In this document: positions 5,591 through 60,510 of the stretch, one piece after another | How the letters are laid out: the number at the start of each line of letters is the position of its first letter | Position numbering within the stretch: position 1 is the stretch's first letter | Assembly: GCA_965644495.1 (NCBI GenBank) | Contig: CBFFSA010000016.1 | Coordinates: 124,001-188,000 of the forward strand | Direction of reading: 5' to 3' | Length of the DNA stretch: 64,000 nt | Source: Perkinsela sp. CCAP 1560/9 | Lineage: Eukaryota; Protista; Euglenozoa: Kinetoplastea | Translations under genes and position numbers: made by a program | Notes under the pieces: generated by a model | What the model was told of the DNA's origin: nothing | Databases searched by the model: none | What the model saw: the letters and a program-made list of their open reading frames with translations, nothing else

Positions 5591-6643
5591 CTACCACTTT
5601 TTAGATCGCAGCGAGCGTCGAACGCTTTCTGAAACTTCAACGAATATTTTTTCTGCACCGTCTACAGTTACCATTTTCATATTGTGCAGTATATCAGATA
5701 AAATGGACGAAAAGGATCGTGAAATTGATTTATGGGACTCGAATACCTCATTTAAATTAATGTTAGAAGTGTCTACTTCAAAGTCGTCTGTTTCGAAGTG
5801 TTTAAATTGCACATCAGTACATCGTGTGGCAGACTCCTATTTTGCCGAGTCTCCGTAATAACAAATAAAGTTTTTCGTTGCCTTGCGTAGGTAGAAGGCA
5901 TAAGTTCTGAACGCACAAGCGGGTACAACTCTTCCGTAACATGGGCGTGTTGTTGAAGGTACAAAAATCCCTCTATGGAGGATAGCATTTCTCGCCTTGC
6001 CACATGGAGCGACAGAGGGCACACGTGCAGCAACGCCAGTGCCCAGGCCGTGCCACTAACATGAACGAATTGCTCTTGATGAGGAATACAATACGTTACG
6101 TGGGAAACTCCATGAGACTTGTTCATTTCATTCTTCTTTGTGTCCGCATATTCCTGTAGAACTCTAGTGTCCACTGCATGTGCCACAGTCGCTGAGTCTG
6201 ATGGAAGACAGTCCAGGCAGACGACACAAAAACGTCCCCCATCTAGAATAAGAACAGCAGCGTCACAAGCGTGGGATCCGTGACGGCTGGATTTCTCTGC
6301 AATGGTTGTCGGGGCACACACAGCCCCCTGGGGTATTCCATATATCGGGTCGGAAGAGTGAAGATCCCAATGAAACGCGTGCAGCAACGCACAACAGAGT
6401 TGATACACCAGTTCATTCTTCTAAAGTAGGAAACGGGATTCCACTTTGCGACGGTGAAAAATTGCTTTCTTCGCTGGCACGTGTGGCACGTAAAATTACT
6501 TTAATAATCGGTTGACGAGCTGAAGTCGTCGTCTGAACATTCGTGCTCGGACGTTTATCTTTCTTTTCTTTTTTTCCTTGGCGTCTGTAACGACGTTGTA
6601 CTCTGTTTTCTGACTCGCTTGATACTACATCTTTTTTCCTCAT
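5591..6643 (-). CDS. Hypothetical protein region split over three ORFs (6413-6643, 5773-6408, 5591-5812); possibly one frameshifted or degenerate gene
   Basis: Adjacent or overlapping ORFs on the same strand as the gene cluster; no family recognised. Confidence 0.3.
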
Positions 6644-37000: not shown

Positions 37001-37200
37001 NNNNNNNNNNNNNNNNNNNNNNNNNNNNNNNNNNNNNNNNNNNNNNNNNNNNNNNNNNNNNNNNNNNNNNNNNNNNNNNNNNNNNNNNNNNNNNNNNNNN
37101 NNNNNNNNNNNNNNNNNNNNNNNNNNNNNNNNNNNNNNNNNNNNNNNNNNNNNNNNNNNNNNNNNNNNNNNNNNNNNNNNNNNNNNNNNNNNNNNNNNNN
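37001..37200. other. Assembly gap
   Basis: 200 N. Confidence 1.
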
Positions 37201-39419: not shown

Positions 39420-40240
39420 TTATTGTAGATTATGAAATTTTGTATGGCTATCTAAACGACTCACGGGATCTGCTGGGTTGTCTTCGGACCGTATGTATCG
39501 CGCTTTGATGCAAATCCCTTGATTCTGATTCATCAGTAAAACTTTCTTCAGTTCGCTAGCGATATTATCGGAATTCGCCATACGTTTATTAATGGCGCCC
39601 TGACAAGACGTGTTATCTATGTATAAGTCAATACACGTCCCCTTCTCAAAGTGATGTTTGAAGTCCTTCAAAGCATTGGTTACGGCCATGGCCTCGGCAT
39701 GATTTACCTCATATTTAAATTCTTTGGGCCAAGAGTCACCTGTAATCTGTACCCCCCCGTCATCGAGATATAGCACTGCTCCCCACCCTTTGCTCGATGC
39801 GTCGGTATATAGGCGGTGCGTATGGGGCACGACGTCTGGGTGCGGAGGTGGTTCAATGGGTATATTCTTTAGCACTTCGTCCCGCCAATCGGCTAGGATG
39901 CATCTCGTGGGTTTAGGAAGAGGTACCGGCTTATCCGCTAGGTGAAGATTTCGGTTTAACATATTAATACGGCGCCTCGCAATTTTGAGCGTAAAATGAA
40001 AACGCGGAATAACATACCCAAGGACTACTGAGGCGTAGAGGAGACGCCCCACCGCCGTCTCCAATTGGGCGTACGTAATAGTGTTAAATCGATCACGACG
40101 TAACTTCAGTAGTACTCGAGGTCCCAGGCTGACCTTGTGCACTATATGATCGTAGTTTACGCCATTAAACACATACTCCAGTTCCGGGGGTGAGCCATGC
40201 TCCTTAAAGGCTCCATTAGCTTCTCTACAGCGGGAGAAAT
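39420..40240 (-). pseudogene. YR-1 RT C-terminus and DIRS-type RNase H
   Basis: YVFNGV, LYTDASSKGWG, VNHAEAMA, YIDNTS, SEDNPADPVSR; RT catalytic core missing at the junction near 40240-40260. Confidence 0.88.
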
Positions 40241-40489
40241 TCTACAGCGGGAATTTCCGCACTTTGGTGCAAAACATTTTATTCATAATGCGCTCTAGTC
40301 GGCTTCGCGTGTCATTCCTCATCCAAGACTTAACTTTATCCAGTTCTATAGTAGGAATTCCCGTCTTAAGATGTAAGGGGTGATGCATGTCCTGCGCCTT
40401 AGCTAAGCGCGAAGTTCTCCTTGCACAAATAATGCTATACCGCTTAACATGTGGGACCTGCTCGAGGCACTTATCTACATCAGCTTGTG

Positions 40490-41641
40490 TTATTGGAGTT
40501 GCAGGAGAGCCGAAGCTCGCTGTGTACCGAGCGCTCTCGCGGTGGTCACTAGGTTTGCGTTGTACCGTAATAGGGAGGTAATGTTCTGATGCTTTGCGAG
40601 ATTTTGAACGTCTGATATTGTTAGTCTTCCTAGAGCAACCTGCTGAAACAGGTACGTTACCGCTCCGCGCTTGATGGAATGTGTTCCGAATTTCGGGCCG
40701 AGAATCTTGCGTATTCGGAGATCCATCTCCCGTACTGTCGTGGCGCTTATGCGCTGCCCTGCAATCATATGCCTGACGTGTTGAGCTATCTCTGGAGTCC
40801 CTGGACCCACTATCGTTGTGCACATGGATAACCGATACGGGTTGAGTCGTGTGGTTTTCGTTTGCCGCCCCCTATACACAATTACTTCGTTGTCGTCCAC
40901 CTTGACAAACCGGTCTTTGGTCAATTCGGCTACTTCGGTCCATCGGCCCCCGGCTTTCCAACAGATCAACACCGCTATCGAATCCCTTGGTATGAGTTTG
41001 GCGCGCAACTTTCTGATATGCCATGGGGTTGCGGGCTCCATTTGGCGGGTTGGTTCTAGCGCTCCCTTTGCTTGCAATGCTTTCGCGTATAGCTGTAGAG
41101 GTCCTGTGGGTTTGTGGGCGAGGTTAAATATCGATTGGAGGCTTCGTGCATATGCGAGAAGTGTTGCGGGTGCAAGATTCAGCTGATCGAGGAACACTAC
41201 AGCGTGTAGGGGTTCGAGGGGGGCGTTTCCCGCGTTGCAAAAGCGGGCCAGTCGATCCCACAACCGACTTCGTGTCATCCAGGTGGCTGTCGTCCACATG
41301 GGGTCTATCGCGCGGCATATCGGTTCGACTACCGGCATTCTCGGTTCCAGTCCCAACAAAGTGCATGTCAGTCTGCGTTTTGCTTGCAGTTCGTTCATGT
41401 TTTCGCTTCCGACGACGTCGCGAGGATCGGGATTTGGACGCTCCCGCTTCGGCGCGTGGACTACAGACCGTATAATGGTCGGAACACTTACATCCGTATT
41501 CCCGGATGAAGGCCAAGAACTGTTTGAAAAGTTCACCCGCCGCGTTTTCGGCAGCTGGGCACGTGCAAAAAAGCCTGGTTTTTTCACCCTCCGTTTGACA
41601 AACGGTCGGGCACGAGCGAGATAAGGGGTGGGGGGCCTTCC
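40490..41641 (-). CDS. YR-1 tyrosine recombinase (open in the gag frame from the gag stop onward)
   Basis: WKAGGRWTE (catalytic R), TKT (K), HSIKRG (HxxR), LAKH, LLRY (Y). Confidence 0.9.
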   Translation of the reverse strand, partial: GRPPTPYLARARPFVKRRVKKPGFFARAQLPKTRRVNFSNSSWPSSGNTDVSVPTIIRSVVHAPKRERPNPDPRDVVGSENMNELQAKRRLTCTLLGLEPRMPVVEPICRAIDPMWTTATWMTRSRLWDRLARFCNAGNAPLEPLHAVVFLDQLNLAPATLLAYARSLQSIFNLAHKPTGPLQLYAKALQAKGALEPTRQMEPATPWHIRKLRAKLIPRDSIAVLICWKAGGRWTEVAELTKDRFVKVDDNEVIVYRGRQTKTTRLNPYRLSMCTTIVGPGTPEIAQHVRHMIAGQRISATTVREMDLRIRKILGPKFGTHSIKRGAVTYLFQQVALGRLTISDVQNLAKHQNITSLLRYNANLVTTARALGTQRASALLQLQ

Positions 41642-42679
41642 CTATTGGCCCCTCTTTGCACCAGCGGTGCCGCTCGTCACCCCCGAGCGAAAACCCGTGG
41701 CGAAGCTGCGTTGCTGGGCTTGATTTAAGGTCGGACAGTACGCACGGATGTGACCCGGCTTGTGGCATTTGTAGCAGAGTAATGCAGGCTTGGCCGGCCC
41801 CTTGGGAGTACGCAGCTGTCGAAGTTTCTCGTCTGCGACAGCCTTCGTATACGCGTCCTTAGCGTCGTCGTCCTTATGCAGCTTTAACTGGAGATTTTCA
41901 ATCGGAATGCCTTGAGATGCCCAGTAATGGTTCCGTAGTTCTTCGATTGCTGTTTGGACAATGCTCAGAAAATACTCCTCACGCCACATTGGGTACATAC
42001 GAGCGGCATACACCCAATCCTGAATAATCTTAAAGAGACGCTCGCGGATGGGCGGGGGGTGAAATAACAAGCCAAACTCCGGTGCCGCCCTAAGATCTCG
42101 GATGAGATCCCTCACGCGCAGCTCATCTTCGGATTTAAGCCAGGGCCCCCAGGTCAACGGTTCATAAGTCGTGAACTTGGCGGGGTCAGTCACAAGCTGC
42201 GGTGTTGCTTGCCCATCTTCAGTCTTCCGCCCCCCTGGCATGACTGCTCGGACACTAGAGATCTCTAGGGAATAGTAATTAATATCCGGGAAAGGGAAAT
42301 CGTATGTCATACCTGGCTCGTCAGACCACTTCGCCTCCAGGGACCCCGATCCATCGCCCTTAAGAGAAATGTTACCCTCTACCGTTTGACGATGAGTTTC
42401 CCCTACATGGCCCCACACGGCCTCAACAGATACCTGGTACCCTCGAGCTACTAAAGATTTAACTTTAGCAGCAAACTCCATCTTCGATTCCTCTGACATG
42501 GCCTCCGCGCCATCCCCACCTCGAAGCAAAGCCGCCACTTGCTCGGGGTTCAGGGTGTTTCTCTGGTCCCGTCCTTGTCGGAGAGATGGGCTCACAGGGT
42601 CTTTAGCATCAACTGGTGGAGGACTGTCCTGTCTGCCCATAGAGAGTGTTCGGCGCACGGTATTCAAAATACCTGCCAT
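41642..42679 (-). CDS. gag: YR-1 Gag-like protein with CCHC knuckle
   Basis: CYKCHKPGHIRAYC; ATG 42679 just downstream of repeat A1. Confidence 0.85.
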   Translation of the reverse strand: MAGILNTVRRTLSMGRQDSPPPVDAKDPVSPSLRQGRDQRNTLNPEQVAALLRGGDGAEAMSEESKMEFAAKVKSLVARGYQVSVEAVWGHVGETHRQTVEGNISLKGDGSGSLEAKWSDEPGMTYDFPFPDINYYSLEISSVRAVMPGGRKTEDGQATPQLVTDPAKFTTYEPLTWGPWLKSEDELRVRDLIRDLRAAPEFGLLFHPPPIRERLFKIIQDWVYAARMYPMWREEYFLSIVQTAIEELRNHYWASQGIPIENLQLKLHKDDDAKDAYTKAVADEKLRQLRTPKGPAKPALLCYKCHKPGHIRAYCPTLNQAQQRSFATGFRSGVTSGTAGAKRGQ

Positions 42680-43214
42680 GGAAAAAACGTTTTTGTTGTT
42701 TATAGGAGGAAATGTCACTAATATACAGTATATTTATAATTACCTCAATCTATCCCTGGTACATAGATAAATAGTTTAGACCCATTTCGGGGTAGAATTT
42801 GAAAACAGTTTAGACCCCTTTCGGGGCACCATCTGCATATCAACAATATAAAGTCTCCTAAATTTCTTATCGTAAACTTATATTCAAAATCGAGCGCAGG
42901 GAAGTGGTAGAGTAGGCCGCGGCGATAATTCCCCCCCCCCTAGGGGTACCCCCCCCCTGGTATGCGCACGAGGGGTCCGACAAGGTCAAAATTTCCGAAA
43001 TTCTTGTGGTGACCAAAAAAATAATAATCTTGACCTAAGAAAAGTAAAAGTATTATTTTTCCAAAATCGAGTACTAAAACGTAGTTTAAGAGTTTCGGAC
43101 CTCAGTTACCATTCTACAACGTGTTTCTTGTCAGATTCGCCTCCTACCCCTATTGGTAAGGCATCAAAAACGGCCCAAATTCAGGTTACAATTTCGCAAT
43201 TTTCGCCGAAAAAT

Positions 43215-44163: not shown

Positions 44164-45491
44164 CGGGTAGGGGGGACCTTCGATGAAGCTTCATCGAAAG
44201 TGTACAACTTTCGATGAAGCACATTGAAAGTTGTACACTTTCGATGAATCTTCATCGAAGGTGTTTTTGACTTTTTTTTATTTTTTCAAATCTTCACGCA
44301 AATGTTTTTCGCGGATCTATATAGACATTTTGACTTTTTTGGTGCTTCATCGAAGTGTTTTGTGAAGGCTCGTAGAGGAATTTCACCGTTTCTTCAGTTT
44401 ATCTTCATCGAAGAGTTTTTGACTGATCCATATACATATTTTGAGCGACAATCCTGCGGAAGGGGTAAACACAGGATTTTCGTTGAGTACTCAACGAAGT
44501 GCCGGATATTCGTTGAGTTCTCAACGAACGGAAATTTACGGTGGAAGTCAAGGACTTTTGTGGAACACCCAAGATTTTTTTTTGATTTTCCTTTTCCGTG
44601 CGTTCAGTATCCTACACTTCACTACATACGTTGACAACGCCTCCGTAGCGAAAACTACGAAATTCAGTGAGCTTCGCAAATTGCTTCCCACTAACGACGC
44701 ACAGGGGAATCCTACGCGGGGTACGGCTCAGGCCCGCTCACGCGGGCCCTCGCCGTTTCGCGGCCGCGCGCACCCCCGCTCACGCGGGGGCCCCCGCGCG
44801 GCCAAAATGGGTACTAAAATTTGTTATCAAGGTAGCTGGGCTTCGCAAATTGCTTCCCACGAATCTAGAGAGAAGCACACGTACAATAATCTTTAACGAT
44901 AAAGATACAGTTTCTGTACCTTGTTGATTATTTACTTTTTTTACCTTTCATGGGAGTGTTCACACGCTCCAAAGCAAAAGAATCAGGAGTAGCTCCTGAG
45001 ATTTTGCCGCTCCCTCGTGCCCGATGGAAAAAGAAGGCCGTGATGCCAACTCATCCGCCCGCCGTGCTAATATACACCACCTCCGCATGGAGCGCGCGGG
45101 TCGCCAAAAAATATAATTATGTCCCAGGGCTACGCTCACAGTTGGGCCTTGCTCGCAAAGGGGGGCTTTTGCCTCCAGAAGCGGGCTACGCTCACAGTTG
45201 GGCCTTGCTCGCAGACGGGGGCCTTGCTTGCACACTTGGGCTTCGCTGACAGTTGGGCCTTGCCTCCAGACATGTAAACGAGATGGTAATGTTCAAATTC
45301 CCCCCAAAAAAAATCGAGACGAAAAATTCGTGCAGCAGTGCCCGTTGGATGAATGATTCATCGAACGCACTGCCCGTTCGATGAATATTCATCGAACGGG
45401 ACGCCTGGTCATCGAACGGGACGCCGTTCAATGAATATTCATCGAACGCACGGTGCGTTCGATGAATTTTCATCGAATGCCCCCCCTGGCC
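44164..45491 (+). mobile_element. ~1.33-kb TIR-like element carrying an SL-like exon and a 99-aa ORF (second copy 47512-48859)
   Basis: Left end CGGGTAGGGGGGACCTTCGATGAA; right end TTCATCGAATGCCCCCCCTGGCC (imperfect inverted match); subterminal palindrome arrays. Confidence 0.6.
44890..44926 (+). other. Spliced-leader-like exon without an intron
   Basis: Same 37-mer; 23 nt upstream of ATG 44950. Confidence 0.75.
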
Positions 45492-45571: not shown

Positions 45572-46300
45572 GTGGGTAGTTTTGTTCGCGAGGAAGAAGG
45601 GAAAAGTATTACCGTAAGTTATCTTTCTGGAAACTACAAGTTGCCGAATCCTAAAGTCAAGTACACACGTATTGAAATTGTTCAAAGTGAACCAGCGATG
45701 CCTGATCGGTTAGAGCAAGCTGTTGACAACACCGAATCAACTCCAAATGATCAAGATGACTTTAAGATTAGAGATGTTCGGACTTGGAACAAATATTTAA
45801 TGACAAACAGCGAATTTGGTGTTGATTTCTTGATTATACGCGTACAAACTGCTCTAGCGCTGCCTTCACCGTTGCCAAACAATTTGCGTCCAATGTGGGA
45901 AGTGCTTGTAGAGTGGATGAACGACATGAAAGGAAGAGGCGGAATCGACCAGGAAAACGTGCCCCAAGTCCGGACTGGACAACGTGCTCTCGACGACCTT
46001 CGTATGCAACAAGGAGTTTATCGTGGTGCGGACCCCAATTACCTCCGAATGATTTATCAAGCTCAAAACGATCCGGAAGACGTCATTGGAAATGGAATAC
46101 ACCACAGTATTAACGTGCAGAAACGTCGACAAGGACCCTACAGTCGGGGAACATCGCGCGGGCTTGGCTACTTTTCACGTTCTCGAGGTCGGAGTCAAGG
46201 GCGAAGCTATGGTACACCAAGTTCAGGCGCAGTTCCCAACGCCAGTAGTGCGTCAGCGTCCTCGGATTTTCCACGAGGGGGCGCTGGCCATCGAATGTGA
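45572..46300 (+). CDS. gag: Element YR-3 Gag-like protein, 5'-truncated (copy 2 at 48940-49668)
   Basis: Homologous to the 61320-62596 protein (VRTW...WE.L..WM...GQ..LD.LR); RG-rich tail instead of a zinc knuckle; followed in frame by a YR N-terminus. Confidence 0.7.
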   Translation: MGSFVREEEGKSITVSYLSGNYKLPNPKVKYTRIEIVQSEPAMPDRLEQAVDNTESTPNDQDDFKIRDVRTWNKYLMTNSEFGVDFLIIRVQTALALPSPLPNNLRPMWEVLVEWMNDMKGRGGIDQENVPQVRTGQRALDDLRMQQGVYRGADPNYLRMIYQAQNDPEDVIGNGIHHSINVQKRRQGPYSRGTSRGLGYFSRSRGRSQGRSYGTPSSGAVPNASSASASSDFPRGGAGHRM

Positions 46301-48257
46301 CTCAAAAGAGTCCACCCCCATATCAGCCAGTTACAAAAAAGCGTAAATCCAAAAGTACGTATTCCGTTTCCAATAAAAATAGCAATACAGAAAAAAATAG
46401 AAAAACAACAAAGCAAGTTAGTAGTAGTGCATTCATTGAAAACAAATCAAGTGGGCAAAGTGCAGAAGACGCAGACAAAAAAAGTCGTCCTCAAACAAAG
46501 TCCCTCAGTAAAAGCAAATTACGAAAGGGCCAGATCAGTAAAACTCAATCGAACAATGACAACAAAATCAAGTACGAATCGCCAGAACCAATCGATACAG
46601 CAAAAATTTTCAAACACGAGCATCCCATCGCATCAGAGACAACAGTGCCCATCTTCGACATCAGGAAGAGTTTCCAAACGTGGTATGATGAAGCTACCCG
46701 AAACATCGGCAAAAAATCATATTACAAAAAATATTTCGGATTACTCATCCGGAAATTATCACCAACCTACAGGGTATGTGGGAAAAATGCACTTGGGACA
46801 CGAGGGCACGATTGGTCTCGGATATGGTACGTCGGAAGTTGCCGTTAACCGACCAGGGCGTAGTCCTATATATAGTACGTATTCATACTACCATCCAGAC
46901 AAAACTGATCTATTTGCGTCACCTAATCGCCATTTTGCGCCGTATGAGACGATCAACTACGCAGACAGAAATGTATTCCAAAACTTTGATCCGCAGGGGG
47001 GCTACCATCCCGGGTCGACAAGCATCCCCTCTTACACGGGCTGCTTTGGAGAAGGTAACACGACAGATGTCCGAGGAAAAGGCTGCTATAGTCCATATTC
47101 GAGCCGATGGCTGTGAAGCGGGACTTCACGTGTGGGTTTTACCAGATTGGTATCCCAAAGAGGGCGAGGCCCAAATTCCGCCTTAGAACGAACAGTGGAG
47201 ACGTGTATGAGATGAACGTCCTCCCGATGGGCCATAGGTGTGCACCGGAGGTTATGCACACGGTTACCGCCGCGATTGCTGGCGAGGCGTCGATTTATTC
47301 TCAGCGCTACTCGTTTCACCGAGGCGCTATCGACGTTTATGTTGACGGAGTTCGGTTTGCAGGAACCGACTCCGAGGCCATCACGTACGCTCAGTTCATT
47401 GACGAGCGTTGCGACAAAGCGAACGGTCTTTTCAAAGATCGGGGTCAGCCCCCTGTAGCACAGTACGTGTTCAATGGGGTGGCGTTCGACCATAACGCGC
47501 ATACGGTCTGCCGGGTAGGGGGGACCTTCGATGAAGCTTCATCGAAAGTGTACAACTTTCGATGAAGCACATTGAAAGTTGTACACTTTCGATGAATCTT
47601 CATCGAAGGTGTTTTTGACTTTTTTTTTATTTTTTCAAATCTTCACGCAAATGTTTTTCGCGGATCTATATAGACATTTTGACTTTTTTGGTGCTTCATC
47701 GAAGTGTTTTGTGAAGGCTCGTAGAGGAATTTCACCGTTTCTTCAGTTTATCTTCATCGAAGAGTTTTTGACTGATCCATATACATATTTTGAGCGACAA
47801 TCCTGCGGAAGGGGTAAACACAGGATTTTCGTTGAGTACTCAACGAAGTGCCGGATATTCGTTGAGTACTCAACGACCGGAAATTTACGGTGGAAATCAA
47901 AGACTTTTGCATAAGTCAAGGACTTTTGTGGAACATCCAAGAATTCTTTTTGATTTCCATTTTCCGTGCGTTCAGTATCCTACACTTCGCTATATACGTT
48001 GACAACGCCTGCGTAGCGAAAACTACGAAATTCAGTGAGCTTCGCAAATTGCTTCCCACTAACGACGCACAGGGGAACCCTACGCGGGGTACGGCTCAGG
48101 CCCGCTCACGCGGGCCCTCGCCGTTTCGCGGCCGCGCGCACCCCCGCTCACGCGGGGGCCCCCGCGCGGCCAAAATGGGTACTAAAATTTGTTATCAAGG
48201 TAGCTGGGCTTCGCAAATTGCTTCCCACGAATCTAGAGAGAAGCACACGTACAATAA

Positions 48258-48294: not shown

Positions 48295-49668
48295 ATTATT
48301 TACTTTTTTTACCTTTCATGGGAGTGTTCACACGCTCCAAAGCAAAAGAATCAGGAGTAGCTCCTGAGATTTTGCCGCTCCCTCGTGCCCGATGGAAAAA
48401 GAAGGCCGTGATGCCAACTCATCCGCCCGCCGTGCTAATATACACCACCTCCGCATGGAGCGCGCGGGTCGCCAAAAAATATAATTATGTCCCAGGGCTA
48501 CGCTCACAGTTGGGCCTTGCTCGCAAAGGGGGGCTTTTGCCTCCAGAAGCGGGCTACGCTCACAGTTGGGCCTTGCTCGCAGACGGGGGCCTTGCTTGCA
48601 CACTTGGGCTTCGCTGACAGTTGGGCCTTGCCTCCAGACATGTAAACGAGATGGTAATGTTCAAATTCCCCCCAAAAAAAATCGAGACGAAAAATTCGTG
48701 CAGCAGTGCCCGTTGGATGAATGATTCATCGAACGCACTGCCCGTTCGATGAATATTCATCGAACGGGACGCCTGGTCATCGAACGGGACGCCGTTCAAT
48801 GAATATTCATCGAACGCACGGTGCGTTCGATGAATTTTCATCGAATGCCCCCCCTGGCCTTTATTACCTTCGTAGTGACGAATTACAAAATAGCATATTA
48901 TTTTTTTACAGAATATTTTTCTATTCTTTTTCCTTCTAGGTGGGTAGTTTTGTTCGCGAGGAAGAAGGGAAAAGTATTACCGTAAGTTATCTTTCTGGAA
49001 ACTACAAGTTGCCGAATCCTAAAGTCAAGTACACACGTATTGAAATTGTTCAAAGTGAACCAGCGATGCCTGATCGGTTAGAGCAAGCTGTTGACAACAC
49101 CGAATCAACTCCAAATGATCAAGATGACTTTAAGATTAGAGATGTTCGGACTTGGAACAAATATTTAATGACAAACAGCGAATTTGGTGTTGATTTCTTG
49201 ATTATACGCGTACAAACTGCTCTAGCGCTGCCTTCACCGTTGCCAAACAATTTGCGTCCAATGTGGGAAGTGCTTGTAGAGTGGATGAACGACATGAAAG
49301 GAAGAGGCGGAATCGACCAGGAAAACGTGCCCCAAGTCCGGACTGGACAACGTGCTCTCGACGACCTTCGTATGCAACAAGGAGTTTATCGTGGTGCGGA
49401 CCCCAATTACCTCCGAATGATTTATCAAGCTCAAAACGATCCGGAAGACGTCATTGGAAATGGAATACACCACAGTATTAATGTGCAGAAACGTCGACAA
49501 GGACCCTACAGTCGGGGAACATCGCGCGGGCTTGGCTACTTTTCACGTTCTCGAGGTCGGAGTCAAGGGCGAAGCTATGGTACACCAAGTTCAGGCGCAG
49601 TTCCCAACGCCAGTAGTGCGTCAGCGTCCTCGGATTTTCCACGAGGGGGCGCTGGCCATCGAATGTGA

Positions 49669-50466
49669 CTCAAAAGAGTCCACCCCCATATCAGCCAGTT
49701 ACAAAAAAGCGTAAATCCAAAAGTACGTATTCCGTTTCCAATAAAAATAGCAATACAGAAAAAAATAGAAAAACAACAAAGCAAGTTAGTAGTAGTGCAT
49801 TCATTGAAAACAAATCAAGTGGGCAAAGTGCAGAAGACGCAGACAAAAAAAGTCGTCCTCAAACAAAGTCCCTCAGTAAAAGCAAATTACGAAAGGGCCA
49901 GATCAGTAAAACTCAATCGAACAATGACAACAAAATCAAGTACGAATCGCCAGAACCAATCGATACAGCAAAAATTTTCAAACACGAGCATCCCATCGCA
50001 TCAGAGACAACAGTGCCCATCTTCGACATCAGGAAGAGTTTCCAAACGTGGTATGATGAAGCTACCCGAAACATCGGCAAAATACATATTACAAAAAATA
50101 TTTCGGATTACTCATCCGGAAATTATCACCAACCTACAGGGTATGTGGGAAAAATGCACTTGGGACACGAGGGCACGATTGGTCTCGGATATGGTACGTC
50201 GGAAGTTGCCGTTAACCGACCAGGGCGTAGTCCTATATATAGTACGTATTCATACTACCATCCAGACAAAACTGATCTATTTGCGTCACCTAATCGCCAT
50301 TTTGCGCCGTATGAGACGATCAACTACGCAGACAGAAATGTATTCCAAAACTTTGATCCGCAGGGGGGCTACCATCCCGGGTCGACAAGCATCCCCTCTT
50401 ACACGGGCTGCTTTGGAGAAGGTAACACGACAGATGTCCGAGGAAAAGGCTGCTATAGTCCATATT
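49669..50466 (+). pseudogene. YR-3 recombinase N-terminal part, truncated by the array junction (copy 1 at 46301-47099 has a frameshift near 46715)
   Basis: GMWEKCTWDTRARL...YSKTLIRRGATIPGRQASPLT aligns with MWSNATWQSRARL...YIKSLLAEGATEPVRQMKPLT. Confidence 0.8.
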
Positions 50467-54440: not shown

Positions 54441-57400
54441 TTTTTTTTTATCTGAATTTGCTCTTATTTTGTTTTTTTTTGCCGTCTAAAGCTCAGTACA
54501 TCCACAGCCATCTCCATCCACAGAATCGAACTGAAAGGTCTTACAATAGGAAAATCTCGCTACATAGTTCACATGGAATTCCTCCCTTTAAGCAATTTTT
54601 TTTTTATTCATTACTAACAAAGGAAAAACCACTTAGAAAGCGAGAGCCATCTCACTCTCATCAGAAATAAACTTCTTCAACTGCGAAAAGGTCACAGCTC
54701 CGTTGAGTTCCTGTAAGTAGAGAGTAAATTCTTGGAGAGTGTTCTCTCTATTCTGGCCGGCGCTGTCCGCGAGTGTGAAAAGAAGCATCTTGAGATTGTC
54801 GTGCATCGCACCTCCGGACAAAATCGGAAGGCATTTAAACTTTTTGTCGGGGATCATTCCAGATTGCACATAAGTAATTTGCTTGCGTCGAATCGCATCC
54901 TTCATGAGCGCAGCACTCCGTTTCCCTAAATTGGAGGTCGCCAGTTCATGGATTACGGTAAAATCGTAATACACCTCACCAGATGCCCAGTAGATAGCAA
55001 TGTCAGGCCCAGATCGATGTAGGACAGCATTTCTACACGTTTGGATATGTTCACGTTTCCTTCCGCAGTCAAACGAGGCTCCACAAGAGGTGCATTTGTA
55101 GGAAGTGAACTGTCGGGGCTCGCGCTCACAGGGGATTCCAGCTTTCATACATAAATTATAAATCCGTCTGACTAAAGCATCGTGCTTTGTTGTCACGTTA
55201 CTCCCTGAACATTGCGCGCATCCGGATACATGGGCCATTGCAGCTTCGGCTGAAAGAAGAATGTGGCAACCAGGGCATTGTAAATTTTCTGGAAGACCCT
55301 TATGTGCGACCCCCAAGCGTGGTAGCAGTGCTAATGTGAATAGTTTTGACGGGAGCAATTTGACGGTCGAGTGTAGCCATCTCGAGTTCCCTTTTTCGCT
55401 TGTTGCACGAATGGTTGGAGCAATCCTGTTATTTTTTAGGAGTTCGTCGCGGATTCCTTTGCTCAACATAGCCTCTGTTGAAAATTCATCGGTTGGGGGG
55501 CGTGACTTTCCTTCCATATCCCCGATCGGCTGGGGAGGCATGGGGGCTACTGCTCGAACTGAAAATTTGTTTAAACGTTCAAGGGCAGCGTGCTGAGATG
55601 CCTCGTAAGCCGATTTGCGGAGGATAACAGAGGGAGTCAGACCAAGACCACCTTCCTTCACCGGTAACCGAGCCAACGCTTTTTGGTGTATGTCCAGCGG
55701 TCCGAACCAAGTATTTAAAACGTCATCTACCTGTTGATCGAACTGCTTAGTAAGTTCAAAACATTCTTGCGGCCGATGTACCCGGATGTGATATCTATGA
55801 CGAACATTCACGCATCTCGCAAGCAACAAGAGTGAAATATTATTGGCGCCCATTGCTTTGAGACGTCGAAAGATGGCTTCATGTTTCTTTAACTTTTCAA
55901 GGAGTAAACTGCTCACTTTGTTGGTTTCCCCGACGAAAGCACCTAGGAGTTTTATCGCCTCATTTTCTGTCCGTAACCCTTCCGTTGTCAGACGTTCAGG
56001 CATTACCAACTTATGAAGACCGCCAAACCAGATGCACTTTTCCGGGGCCATCGAAATTTTCTTTTGTGTGAGTAGATCATTCAGTCTGAGATATGCCTGT
56101 TGCAAGAGATTTGTATCAGAAGACGCAAGGCTGATATCGTCGACATAGGCGTAGATGCGAAGAGTGGGGAATTCCTGTGCCAGAGATTCAAGGATGGGTT
56201 GCAACATTGTGCAAAAGTACAGAGTTGATAAAGATGACCCTTGGCGTACTCCAGATGAGCTCTTGACAGTTCCAAATAGTTCTCCGTTCTGCCCAAAGAA
56301 AAGTAGTTCAGACGGTGTTCCGTATTCAGCTGCAAAGAAACGTTGAAATGGACGAAGGGTGTGAAAGGCGAAGAGTGACTTAGCAATTTCGTCTCGAGGT
56401 GGACAGTTGAAAGCGTTTTTTAGATCCACGGTGAGTATCGCATTTCCTTCCAGGTATCTGCGGATTATTTCGTGAATTATTGTCTCACATCCAGCCTTGC
56501 TCATCACCCCATGTTGCATAGGCAGGAAAAACTTTTCGAAAGCATGTTCGTGTCGTAAAAGGAGTATGAGCCCTGCAAGCTTAAGGAAAACCTCGCCGAC
56601 TGCAACTGGTCGAACTGCGTTATTATTTTTGGGAAGCGCAACCAGTCTCGCCCTGCGCAATCGCTTCATAACGTCTGGTGAAAGCAGGCCGTTAAGAAGA
56701 TCACAATACATGTGGCAAAGACTCATGCAACTAACTTCGTCGTCGAGGAGTAAGCGAAGAATTGTGTCGGTTGTGCCAGTCGGTCCTGGTGCAGAGCCTT
56801 TGGCAAGTCTTTTCCCAGACTCCCGAAGCTCTTCCGGAGAAATGCAAGCTATTTTGGGCGGATCTTGGGGAAGCTCGAACGTGACGGGGTTCTCAGGATG
56901 TAGTATTTCGAGCTTCTGAAGTTTTTCGGCGTCGCTGAGGTTAGTTTCCTTGAATTCTTGATCTAGCACATGTGTCGCTTTCGAAACGCAGCTTTCCAGA
57001 GCAAGTCTTGCGGCCTTTTTAATAGCTCTTAAGTCATGTTCTTTAGCCTCGTTGTGTTCTTGCGCGGACGAGTGCGCTTGTGTAGAGTTCGCTTCTTGTA
57101 TCGGGCGCCGCCGTCGCCTCCTCCCACCTAGATTGCGAATTGTGGCTAATGAATATTTCATTGCGGACAGAGTGCGATGCCAGATTCTATTGCGTTCCTC
57201 GTACGTAGAGTCAGCATACTCGCGTACGATGTCGCGATAAATTGCTACGACGCACGGAACGAACTCTGACGGGATTGTCCTCATTGTGGGCATGGGTTCG
57301 AAATCAAGATCGCAATCTGTGTAAGCGTTGTTGTGTAGTTCTTGCGGGGCCTCAGTGTGTGTGTAATTCTCGCGGTTTATCCAATGCAGTTGATGTACAC

Positions 57401-57560
57401 GAACGTTCGGGGGTGGAGGTATAAAACCATCAAAAGTGGTGTCGGCCTTGTGACCCGTTATTCCGTCATATTTAATTGATAGGCTACCAATACCGCCGCG
57501 CTTCCTCGTAGACTTTACATCCCCGCACGAAATATTGAGCAATTGTTGGTCATTGAAACT
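54441..57560 (-). mobile_element. CRE/SLACS-clade non-LTR retrotransposon (RT + restriction-like endonuclease; ORF 54633-57641, true 5' end disrupted)
   Basis: KGSAPGPTG, RPVAVGE, QHGV, VDLKNAFN, GVRQGSSLS, AYVDD, KLLG, LPVKEGGLG, CPGCH..HVSGC, KHD, PDI...YDFTV; A-rich tail near 54441. Confidence 0.92.
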
Positions 57561-57561
57561 C

Positions 57562-57629
57562 CTTCTTTTTGTTAAGACCCTTCTTTTTGTTAAGACCCTT
57601 CTTTTTGTTAAGACCCTTCTTTTTGTTAA
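57562..57629. repeat. 18-bp tandem repeat, about 3.7 copies (CTTCTTTTTGTTAAGACC)
   Basis: Directly visible; produces the artefactual TKRRVL N-terminus of the CRE ORF. Confidence 0.9.
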
Positions 57630-57899
57630 AGCAATTACCACGTGATGAATGAAAAAACCCCTCTGGTAAGTGCCTTAAAAAGAACGAAGGCCTCCGGTTT
57701 AATCAGTTTTGAAGCAATTGTGGAGAAGCTTGATTACGCCAGGTTGGGTCGGAGTAACTTGTTTCTACCATCGCCAAAACGATCGATGGAGCGAGTTGCT
57801 ACCAAACTTCGTCCGAAAGCACGCATGGAATAAGGTCAGGACTGATATTCCGAACGGTGGGTATCACTATTTTACACAAGTTTACATATTATAAAGGAA

Positions 57900-58587: not shown

Positions 58588-59625
58588 CTAAATAATTCTT
58601 AATTTCTTTGTCGCATTTTGTGTCCCCAATGCTAATGCCGTCGTCACGGGATCTGCGTTGTAGCGTAGCAGGGATTCCAGGGCCTGGTGTTTGGCTAGGT
58701 GTTGTACCTCGTCTAGACGGAGAGTCCCTTTTACCACTTCGGCGAACAGTTGTGTTATTGCCCCCCTTTTCGCCGAGTGCGTTCCGTACCCCTTTCCTAG
58801 AATATCCCGAATTCTGCTGTCGACCTGGGATACTGGGGTCCGAGACATGGGTTCCCACTGCCCCAATCGGTTGATATACTCGTATAGTTGCCTGGTTCCC
58901 TGTCCCTCTATCACCGTGTACATGGAAGGGCGGAAAGGATTTAATCGAGACGTTTTCGTGTTCCTGCCCCACCAGATAACTATTCGGTGGGGTGTTACCT
59001 CGTGAAATTGCGTTTTTGTCAAACTTGCTGTTTCGGTCCACCGACTTGCTGCTTTCCAGGAGAGCAGTAAGGTATGTTTTTCGCTCCTTGGGAGATGTCG
59101 CCAAAGTCGATGGAGTAACTCGGGGGTCAACGGTTTCATTTGCCGCACTGGCTCGGTCGCCCCCTCCGCTAGGAGCGACTTTATATAGAATTTCAGCGGA
59201 TTCGTTTCCGTGCCCGCGAGGTTTAACAACGTAGCGAGACTTCGCGCGTATGTAATCTTTCCCTGCACTCTGATGTTCATACTCGCCAGAAACGTTACTG
59301 CGTGTATCGCGTTGAGCGTTATTCCCTTCCCCTTGCAAAATGCGTTCAGTCGCTCCCACAGCCTCGCGCGGCTCTGCCATGTCGCATTGCTCCACATTTC
59401 GGACATGGCATCCATAGCAGTCCGTATTTCGTCGGTCATATGTGTGACCCCCATCAATAGTCGCAATAATTCCATTCTTTCCGGTGTTGTTTGAACGCTT
59501 AGCGTTCTCCCGTAAACGCGCCCGGAGCGTAATATTCTCCCTTTCAAGTTTACAACACTGTGGACCTTCCCAGCTTGGCTGTTTGAATCTTCGGTTTGTA
59601 GTTTCCTCCTCTTTGATACTGGCAT
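58588..59625 (-). CDS. YR-2 tyrosine recombinase
   Basis: Complete R-K-HxxR-H-Y catalytic set; clear homology to the YR-1 recombinase. Confidence 0.9.
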   Translation of the reverse strand: MPVSKRRKLQTEDSNSQAGKVHSVVNLKGRILRSGRVYGRTLSVQTTPERMELLRLLMGVTHMTDEIRTAMDAMSEMWSNATWQSRARLWERLNAFCKGKGITLNAIHAVTFLASMNIRVQGKITYARSLATLLNLAGTETNPLKFYIKSLLAEGATEPVRQMKPLTPELLHRLWRHLPRSEKHTLLLSWKAASRWTETASLTKTQFHEVTPHRIVIWWGRNTKTSRLNPFRPSMYTVIEGQGTRQLYEYINRLGQWEPMSRTPVSQVDSRIRDILGKGYGTHSAKRGAITQLFAEVVKGTLRLDEVQHLAKHQALESLLRYNADPVTTALALGTQNATKKLRII

Positions 59626-59682
59626 TATTGTTATACTGCCTCTTTTGAAACTGATTGTACTGGCCGTTTGGGTGGGACTTTG

Positions 59683-60510
59683 TCAGAAGTTCTTGCCGCT
59701 GTGCGCAGGGCCAGCCACCCTTGAACGAAAATCCGGTTGTTGGAAGCGTTTTGGGCAGTTCCGCCACATGTGGTCAGGCGAGCGACATCCGAAGCAAAGC
59801 CCTCCTCTGCGAAATGTTGTAGGTGGTCGGGTAAACCCCAAATCTTGAGGATACGAACGAGCTGCCGTAGATTGCGCCGTGTAGGTCGTGTACGCGCGAG
59901 CATAGTGCTTCTGTCGTTCAGCAAGCTGATCGCTTACGTGATGGTAAAATTTATCGTTCGGCCGAACCTCCTTCTGTAATTTTTCGTGGACCAACTCTAC
60001 ATCAACACGACGTGCACGCCAGTATGCATCCCGAAGCATCTGAACAATGGCTCTTCCCATTTCTATAAAAGCCCCCTGATTCCATCCGGGCGTCTGACGG
60101 GCCAATACGATCCACTTGCAAAAGATCCCCGTAAAATTCCGCTCCTGTTGTTTCACAAAAGAACGATCCTGGAAGAACTGATTGACCCTTAATCCAAACT
60201 CGGGAGCGTCACGCAACTCGCGCATTAAGTCTCGGGTACGAAAGCCACCCTCATCCAATGTTAGAAGCCATGGTTCGTAAGTGATTGGTTCGTACGGGTC
60301 CAGTGCATTGGGATCAAGAATGGGGGGCGTCGTTTCACTAGCAGAAAGGTCTCCTGGCAATCCCTGTTCTCCATGGTCAGTAGTAGTCACCGGACGTGGA
60401 ACTCGAGATGTCATAGTCTGTGTTCGCGGTAATACCGCAGTCGGATCTCGCTCCCTCCAATCTTGCGACGAAATGCGCCCAGCTGTTTCGAGAGGCCAAA
60501 CACGACACAT
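59683..60510 (-). CDS. gag: YR-2 Gag-like protein
   Basis: YEPITYEPWL...LR.APEFGL shared with YR-1 Gag; CCHC knuckle. Confidence 0.85.
   Translation of the reverse strand: MCRVWPLETAGRISSQDWRERDPTAVLPRTQTMTSRVPRPVTTTDHGEQGLPGDLSASETTPPILDPNALDPYEPITYEPWLLTLDEGGFRTRDLMRELRDAPEFGLRVNQFFQDRSFVKQQERNFTGIFCKWIVLARQTPGWNQGAFIEMGRAIVQMLRDAYWRARRVDVELVHEKLQKEVRPNDKFYHHVSDQLAERQKHYARAYTTYTAQSTAARSYPQDLGFTRPPTTFRRGGLCFGCRSPDHMWRNCPKRFQQPDFRSRVAGPAHSGKNF

Follow-up and report, generated by a model that had tools for sequence, protein, structure and literature searches.

We analysed a stretch of 64,000 nucleotides (nt) from the genome of the kinetoplastid Perkinsela sp. CCAP 1560/9 (contig CBFFSA010000016.1, positions 124,001 to 188,000; hereafter the window, in whose own coordinates positions are given). 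It contains YR-1, a tyrosine-recombinase (YR) retrotransposon with the gene order gag-YR-RT/RNase H (RT, reverse transcriptase) on the minus strand. The end of the gag-like gene of YR-1 carries a slippery heptamer followed by a compact fold that encloses the gag stop codon. With a fair degree of confidence we interpret this stretch as a recoding cassette, predicted to give Gag, Gag-Pol by a -1 frameshift and probably Gag-YR by readthrough of the stop codon. A reading of the window made beforehand from the letters alone (the sequence-only reading) had proposed that a single mRNA yields Gag, Gag-YR and a Gag-linker-RT/RNase H fusion. Comparison between copies now argues strongly that a -1 shift produces the last of these, while the support that we obtained for the readthrough half of the proposal is indirect.

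The gag-like open frame of YR-1 (41642-42733, 0 frame) runs from 42733 to 41645, with its first ATG at 42679, and closes with a TAG at 41644-41642; it gave no match in a Pfam search. Past the TAG the 0 frame is open for a further 383 codons (41641-40493) and ends in TAA, the whole continuation spanning 40490-41641. This had been read as an extension of the frame into a recombinase, and the comparison agrees: there is a weak match to Pfam Phage_integrase (E=2e-4, below the cut-off), the stretch shows the codon-position pattern of 0-frame coding, and alignments place a linker at about codons 26-85 after the TAG and a conserved core from about codon 90. The -1 frame is open across and after the heptamer (41127-41858, minus strand) until it is closed by TAA 41126-41124, the first of three stops in this frame, the others being TAG 40874-40872 and TAG 40244-40242. 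A leftover -1-frame piece at 39423-40241 on the same strand retains an RNase H domain (Pfam RT_RNaseH, 2.9e-8). When YR-1 is compared by blastn with two genome copies that are 97-99% identical to it (L034 and L035), about 555-580 nt of the RT core are found to be missing between 40261 and 40235. With its RT core deleted and three stops in its -1 frame, YR-1 is a defective, non-autonomous copy, with an intact cassette. The proposal that the -1 frame encodes RT further downstream fails for YR-1 itself and holds for its sister copy L034, which shares 97.0% identity with YR-1 in gag-YR and 99.4% in the RNase H part, and in which the -1 frame runs through 949 open codons from the heptamer to RVT_1 and RT_RNaseH domains (RT_RNaseH above the Pfam cut-off, RVT_1 and Phage_integrase below it). 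With RT, RNase H and tyrosine recombinase together, L034 belongs to the YR (DIRS-order) class, of whose defining domains YR-1 itself retains RNase H and recombinase only. No protease or DDE integrase domain was seen by Pfam in YR-1 or the sister copy. In the YR-1 overlap at 41126-40490, both nonsense changes upstream of the deletion strike the -1 frame only, and the 0 frames of gag (363 codons) and recombinase (383 codons) are still fully open. A run of 200 N at 37001-37200, an assembly gap or masked sequence, lies just past the element's 3' end.

The cassette of YR-1, on the minus strand throughout, starts with the heptamer GGGTTTT at 41690-41696, which the gag codons divide as G-GGT-TTT, the X_XXY_YYZ register. 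A 6-nt spacer, CGCTCG (41684-41689), of fixed length and with a sequence that differs among families, leads to the 5' strand of stem 1, GGGGTG (41678-41683, pairing with 41630-41625), which is directly abutted by the 5' strand of stem 2, ACGAGCG (41671-41677, pairing with 41618-41612). Two hairpins follow: hairpin 1, GCACC-GCT-GGTGC, at 41658-41670, and hairpin 2, GGGGCC-AATAGGGAA-GGCCCC, at 41632-41652, whose loop holds the gag TAG. The 3' strand of stem 1, CACCCC (41625-41630), lies within an invariant CCCCACCCC block and is separated from the 3' strand of stem 2, CGCTCGT (41612-41618), by the 6-nt loop TTATCT (41619-41624). Heptamer, spacer, both stems in the order S1a-S2a-S1b-S2b (S1 and S2 being the two stems, a and b their 5' and 3' strands), which is pseudoknot order, and the two hairpins of the middle loop with the stop in the second were all found where the sequence-only reading had put them. 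The extent that it gave to the element was too short at the 3' end, where an extended hairpin 3 at 41587-41610 (outer stem CCC/GGG, inner stem CCGTTT/AAACGG) abuts stem 2 and a conserved ACCAGG block at 41574-41579 forms the edge of the cassette. Three further pairings were considered and rejected. Pairing of the spacer CGCTCG with CGAGCG is not conserved; pairing of CACCCC with a downstream GGGTG is contradicted by the GGGTG varying uncompensated and covarying instead with GCCC, as the outer stem of hairpin 3; and the same covariation of GGGTG with GCCC disposes of a GGGU-GCCC extension of stem 2 that was seen in a 100-nt fold.

In order to evaluate the reading frames around the cassette, we counted stops in five elements of different families in which the -1 frame is open. 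In these elements the -1 frame contains 13-28 stops within the last 900 nt of gag and none in the overlap with the YR gene (1.15-1.23 kb), as against 23-31 in the +1 frame. Only 15-162 nt upstream of the heptamer does the -1 frame open; in four genome elements it is unbroken and continues for 915-949 codons to RT/RNase H. The short -1 stretch ahead of the heptamer contains an AUG in two families and lacks one in two others, and three families have no AUG in this frame for 329-382 codons after the heptamer. Substitutions within the overlap follow the codon pattern of the recombinase frame. No selection on the amino acids of the -1 frame was detected there, this frame and the non-coding +1 frame having the same amino-acid identity; therefore, the -1 reading of the recombinase gene is a spacer that is only kept open. 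The cassette combines the elements by which -1 programmed ribosomal frameshifting signals are recognized, namely a heptamer in register, a spacer of 5-9 nt before a fold, and an overlapping -1 open reading frame (ORF) that lacks a conserved start and encodes a downstream enzyme, and we consider it very likely from these comparisons that ribosomes shift to the -1 frame here.

Cassettes of this type are widespread in the genome. A blastn search returned 22 related places, some of the matches starting exactly at the heptamer, and in these copies the cassette is far better conserved than the coding sequence that flanks it. A covariance model (R1) built on 14 cassettes, in which stem 2 and the hairpins were modelled and stem 1 was left outside, found at least 103 cassette matches of many score classes in the 21-Mb genome, about 45 of them near-identical copies of one class of 137 nt. 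YR retrotransposons look abundant in this genome, and some families look recent. We measured covariation on 30 distinct sequences aligned to the model, a fit that favours stem 2 and the hairpins. Of all cells, 87% were paired, compared with 37-55% when partners were slid; changes on both sides were present in 19 of 29 pairs, and the observed covariation score exceeded that of each of 500 shuffles. Covariation had been set beforehand as the check on the proposed structure, and it was found inside the genome in four of the five helices, stem 1 being the exception, for which relatives from other samples supplied the compensatory changes. In stem 2, paired at 99%, covariation was seen in four of the seven pairs. 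All four modelled pairs of hairpin 1 covary, and in some families this hairpin is expanded by multiples of 3 nt. The stem of hairpin 2 covaries as well (e.g. GGAGCC/GGTTCC and GCAC/GTGC), and the gag stop is in or beside its loop in all families. In hairpin 3 the inner stem covaries, and the outer stem does so by eye (GCCC/GGGT versus CTCC/GGAG, GCTC/GAGC and GTTTG/CGAAC). The heptamer column reads GGGTTTT, GGATTTT, GGTTTTT, GGTTTTC or GGGTTTC across genome families, each a workable shift site, and almost every complete cassette has it in gag register. Throughout the genome the aligned spacer measures 6 nt, and the stop follows the heptamer at 45-87 nt, always in phase, all loop expansions being multiples of 3.

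Single copies show further variation. A small family represented by L050 and L051 (G000:C74:21583-21794 and G000:C1:3312513-3312724) has GATTTTT at the heptamer position. In L048 (G000:C19:168582-168790) the TAG is replaced by TAC, and gag and recombinase would form one open frame across the cassette. Locus L026 (G000:C23:57500-65500) holds two cassettes of different families on the same strand, with heptamers at locus positions 6131 and 4551, 1.6 kb apart, suggesting that YR elements inserted in tandem or one inside another.

When the RT part was used as a protein query, relatives were identified in other sources; one is a protein of the prokinetoplastid Papus ankaliazontas, derived from a transcript and 41-42% identical. 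The cassette layout is present in three contigs from other samples, the relatives L061, L064 and L066. In L061 (RT 38% identical) a GGATTTT heptamer and a 6-nt spacer precede stems GGGGGA/TCCCCC and ACCGG/TCGGT, with the TGA, at +51, in the loop of a hairpin; after the stop the 0 frame continues for 355 codons, and the -1 (RT) frame runs for 949 codons from the heptamer. L064 (RT 30-31% identical) has GGGAAAC, stems GCGGGG/CCCCGC and CAGGAG/CTCCTG, and a TGA at +45 in a loop, followed by 586 codons in the 0 frame, while its -1 (RT) frame is open for about 1290 codons. The first stem of each of these two relatives is a compensatory variant of stem 1. L066 (RT 28% identical) has AAAAAAC and a TGA at +66 in a hairpin, with 403 codons in the 0 frame after the stop and 1034 open codons in the -1 (RT) frame. 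In all three the 0-frame continuation is a homologue of the recombinase (hhalign probabilities of 100, 99.6 and 90% for L061, L064 and L066, respectively). The heptamer has thus been exchanged for other canonical shift sites in the same register, which argues strongly against a mere constraint on the encoded dipeptide. In a scan that placed this class of pseudoknot 5-7 nt after the heptamer, YR-1, YR-2 and YR-3 (the two further elements of the window described below) and L064 scored higher than all of 300 dinucleotide shuffles, and L061 was matched by 3 of 300. Searches of metagenomes gave 296 pattern matches with the recombinase alignment, none of which was confirmed, and 12 loci with the RT alignment, among which the layout was seen in L066 only.

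Two further arrangements were noted among the loci collected. A more distant RT relative, L063 (ENA ERZ24900291 ctg3930l), has a perfect CCCAAAC, at locus position 2989, exactly where its RT frame opens. Its 0-frame stop follows 12 nt past the heptamer, there is no overlap with a recombinase, and only 75 codons are open upstream; this may be a different arrangement of the same idea. In P0016 and P0018 a gag-like gene overlaps a gene of 826-851 amino acids by 4 nt, a gene layout that looks like that of the cassette elements.

A number of observations weigh against the recoding interpretation. The label of an H-type pseudoknot, which the sequence-only reading had applied, is right as to strand order and wrong as to topology: loop 1 measures 0 nt and loop 2 measures 43 nt and contains two hairpins, so the coaxial stacking of a classical H-type pseudoknot is impossible for the YR-1 fold. 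A better description is a three-way junction of stem 2, hairpin 1 and hairpin 2, in which stem 1 is formed by the 3' junction strand together with the 5' flank, and hairpin 3 abuts stem 2. Nested minimum-free-energy z-scores of single sequences are only -0.8 to -2.7, and nested folds with stem 1 or with stem 2 are nearly iso-energetic; as single-sequence folding energy is not decisive, the case rests on comparison between copies. In that comparison stem 1, though 98% paired, is invariant inside the genome, and its covariation comes from few relatives, parsed by hand and with the pseudoknot scan. The fold of L066 is a different, branched one that encloses the stop hairpin, and the layout was not found in L062, L063 and L065. 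After a shift, GGAUUUU and GGUUUUU would re-pair imperfectly in the P site, and heptamers of the GAUUUUU family poorly. As regards readthrough, the stop is not followed at about 8 nt by a conserved structure of the murine leukaemia virus (MuLV) type; hairpin 3, which begins about 33 nt away, is the one self-contained structure conserved downstream. A ribosome with the stop in its A site has already passed the 5' strands of stems 1 and 2. The YR or RT proteins may also come from mRNAs of their own, produced by separate trans-splicing.

These last points bear on whether the cassette recodes its stop at all. It is possible, though on the whole unlikely, that the cassette only frameshifts: it would make Gag-Pol, the stop would be a plain gag terminator, and the recombinase would be obtained by internal or non-AUG initiation, by reinitiation or from a separate trans-spliced mRNA, internal sites being open to trans-splicing in kinetoplastid-type genomes. 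On this account the stop would be in a hairpin loop for reasons of base composition, as a G+C-rich fold tolerates A/U nowhere but in its loops, and besides the missing readthrough-type structure behind the stop it can draw on a Met conserved in the PMW motif of the recombinase and on one family with an ATG two codons past the stop. The first ATG after the stop, however, may be anywhere from codon 2 to codon 95, conserved recombinase residues start upstream of the only conserved Met, and no AUG is conserved ahead of the first conserved block. Moreover, gag and recombinase share one frame behind a single stop in every family and in every relative showing the layout, and in elements with an unbroken 0 frame 363-586 codons are open after that stop. 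The first 25 of these codons are conserved at all three codon positions, because the RNA fold lies there. Codons 26-85 form a linker with no codon-position bias and about 56% pairwise difference, and stops in the 0 and -1 frames are absent from it in eight of eight elements (0-5 in the +1 frame). From base composition, the chance of a stop-free linker is 0.03-0.14 per family, with a product of about 3e-8 over seven families if these are independent, which is hard to reconcile with a plain terminator. It is because this unconstrained linker stays open after the stop in every family that we argue for readthrough of the gag stop into the recombinase, a possibility that we regard as evenly poised. 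The stop contexts are CAA-UAG-G, CAC-UAG-G or UGA-C, with UAG-GGA in YR-1; these resemble contexts known as leaky. A reassigned stop codon was considered and rejected: ordinary stops in this genome include TAG, as ORFs of the host in the window end in TAA, TGA or TAG and are followed by short open stretches only.

It is very unlikely, in our judgement, that the fold has some other task in the RNA (as an element for packaging or dimerisation, a signal for reverse transcription, a knot that resists nucleases or a ribozyme), with the heptamer conserved as a Gly/Asp/Val-Phe dipeptide and RT translated independently. In favour of such a task, most frameshift stimulators are smaller and less branched than this fold, which reaches past stem 2, the invariant CCCCACCCC block could be a protein-binding site, and a pseudoknot between 5' flank and junction over a three-way junction resembles nuclease-resistant RNAs. 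Against it stand a -1 frame that opens at the heptamer and stays free of stops for about 2.7-2.9 kb with no conserved AUG, a spacer fixed at 6 nt, and the GGGAAAC and AAAAAAC of relatives, which encode different dipeptides in the same register. In addition, no Rfam family, ribozymes included, matched the cassette at E<=1 in the 37.5-52.5 kb part of the window that was searched; the search gave only weak miRNA-like matches, on unrelated long hairpins. Less probable still is a change of frame in the transcript itself, with the polymerase slipping on the four or five consecutive T that form the conserved core of the heptamer. Known transcriptional slippage sites need longer homopolymer runs, GGGAAAC of L064 has runs of only three, and a fold that covaries and keeps a fixed distance of 6 nt is characteristic of slippage by ribosomes.

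The analysis shows the anatomy of the cassette, the conservation and covariation of its parts and the statistics of the frames. On this basis the recoding interpretation can be put as a sequence of steps, in which the occurrence and the rates of slippage and of readthrough are what we infer. Ribosomes translating gag would reach G_GGU_UUU and meet, 6 nt downstream, a compact fold that resists unwinding, formed by stems 1 and 2 in pseudoknot order, the two inner hairpins and the abutting third hairpin. A fraction would slip back by one base and read the whole recombinase gene in the -1 frame, as a spacer, into RT/RNase H, giving a Gag-spacer-Pol fusion; in the YR-1 copy, a shifted ribosome would stop after 190 codons. 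For ribosomes that have not slipped, the gag stop would come 17 codons later, inside the loop of hairpin 2; most would terminate there and release Gag, and a minority would probably decode the stop as an amino acid and, staying in frame, cross the variable linker into the recombinase, giving Gag-YR. More tentatively, the two events could be coupled, because the stop sits inside the frameshift-stimulating fold, and a cassette of about 120 nt might then partition ribosomes three ways, between termination (Gag), readthrough (Gag-recombinase) and the -1 shift (Gag-spacer-RT/RNase H). We put this forward as a doubtful possibility: if coupling were true, the folding state of one structure would set the stoichiometry of all three retrotransposition proteins, and if the three-way reading were true, the YR/pol overlap of DIRS-like elements would be a by-product of translating pol through the recombinase gene.

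The same layout had been reported for two other elements of the window, YR-2 and YR-3, and it does recur in both, with TGA stops and different stems. The YR-2 cassette (59625-59737, minus strand) has GGATTTT at 59734-59728, stem 1 GGGTGG/CCACCC, stem 2 CTGGCC/GGCCAG and the TGA at 59685-59683 in a hairpin loop. Its 0 frame encodes 364 recombinase codons after the stop, and its -1 frame is open from 59773 to 58196, ending after about 510 codons. Just downstream of the truncated YR-2, in another frame, a minus-strand ORF of 1002 amino acids (54633-57641) has a strong RVT_1 match (3e-20) and is probably a different, non-YR retroelement that adjoins or is interrupted by YR-2. The YR-3 cassette (46264-46331, plus strand, repeated at 49632-49699) has GGATTTT, a 6-nt spacer, stems GGGGG/CCCCC and GCTGGC/GCCAGT, and a TGA (46298-46300) at a hairpin. 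Its 0-frame continuation was left out of the protein analyses, as it shares 15% identity with the recombinases and does not align with them. Two identical long hairpins at 45342-45480 and 48710-48848, 3368 bp apart, belong to the repeated composite array that carries both YR-3 cassettes; they gave weak Rfam matches of the miRNA-precursor type, far below the gathering scores.

In the literature that we searched, the expression of RT from an ORF that overlaps the recombinase ORF in YR retrotransposons is left unexplained, only the overlap being described, and a conserved and covarying -1 cassette at the end of gag would provide a concrete answer that is directly testable, the cassette being small enough for reporter assays. 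It would add a class of retroelements to the known users of frameshifting, and a stop embedded in the same fold, with an in-frame recombinase behind it, would pack two recoding events compactly into a single signal. The covariance model is, in addition, a marker of sequence and structure by which such elements can be annotated in protist genomes and metagenomes.

Compared by their described layout, DIRS1-like, VIPER and TATE elements resemble the YR-1 class in having a gag-like ORF, a recombinase and RT/RNase H. The YR and RT/RNase H ORFs of such elements often overlap extensively, and where frameshifts are mentioned in this literature they are mutations or refer to ORF phase only (PMC6681497, PMC3266345, PMC3783388). 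No paper that pairs ribosomal frameshifting with elements of the DIRS, VIPER or TATE type was found in the searched literature, and the paper on the mechanism of DIRS-1 does not address ribosomal frameshifting.

Among characterized recoding signals, the cassette would work like the gag-pol signals of retroviruses, long-terminal-repeat retrotransposons and totiviruses, such as human immunodeficiency virus 1, Rous sarcoma virus, mouse mammary tumour virus (MMTV) and the yeast L-A virus. It shares with them an X_XXY_YYZ heptamer at the end of gag, a spacer of 5-9 nt and a downstream structure or pseudoknot, and its elements likewise have a pol frame that lacks a start and overlaps the end of gag. 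Its heptamer variants resemble known shift sites, among them G_GAU_UUA of MMTV pro-pol, G_GGU_UUA of L-A, and G_GUU_UUU of cardioviruses and porcine reproductive and respiratory syndrome virus. Unlike those systems, the host of the cassette is a YR retrotransposon without protease or DDE integrase, a shifted ribosome must cross about 380 recombinase codons in another frame before it reaches RT, and the gag stop lies inside the stimulatory fold. The three-stemmed coronavirus frameshift pseudoknot and other elaborated pseudoknots also contain extra internal helices and begin 6 nt after the slip site; in the cassette, by contrast, the extra hairpins lie between the 5' strand of stem 2 and the 3' strand of stem 1 (loop 2), loop 1 is 0 nt long, and a further hairpin abuts stem 2. 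As regards readthrough, where the cassette may act in the manner of MuLV, gag-pol of that virus has, like YR-1, a gag UAG followed by G, an in-frame gene for an enzyme downstream and an associated pseudoknotted RNA. The MuLV pseudoknot is wholly downstream, about 8 nt past the stop, whereas in YR-1 the stop is in a loop within the fold, and the downstream gene is pol in MuLV and the recombinase in YR-1. Finally, in alphaviruses and luteoviruses both readthrough and -1 frameshifting are used in one genome to set protein ratios. There the two signals are at separate sites and in different genes, whereas the cassette has slip site and stop in a single conserved fold, 45-87 nt from each other.

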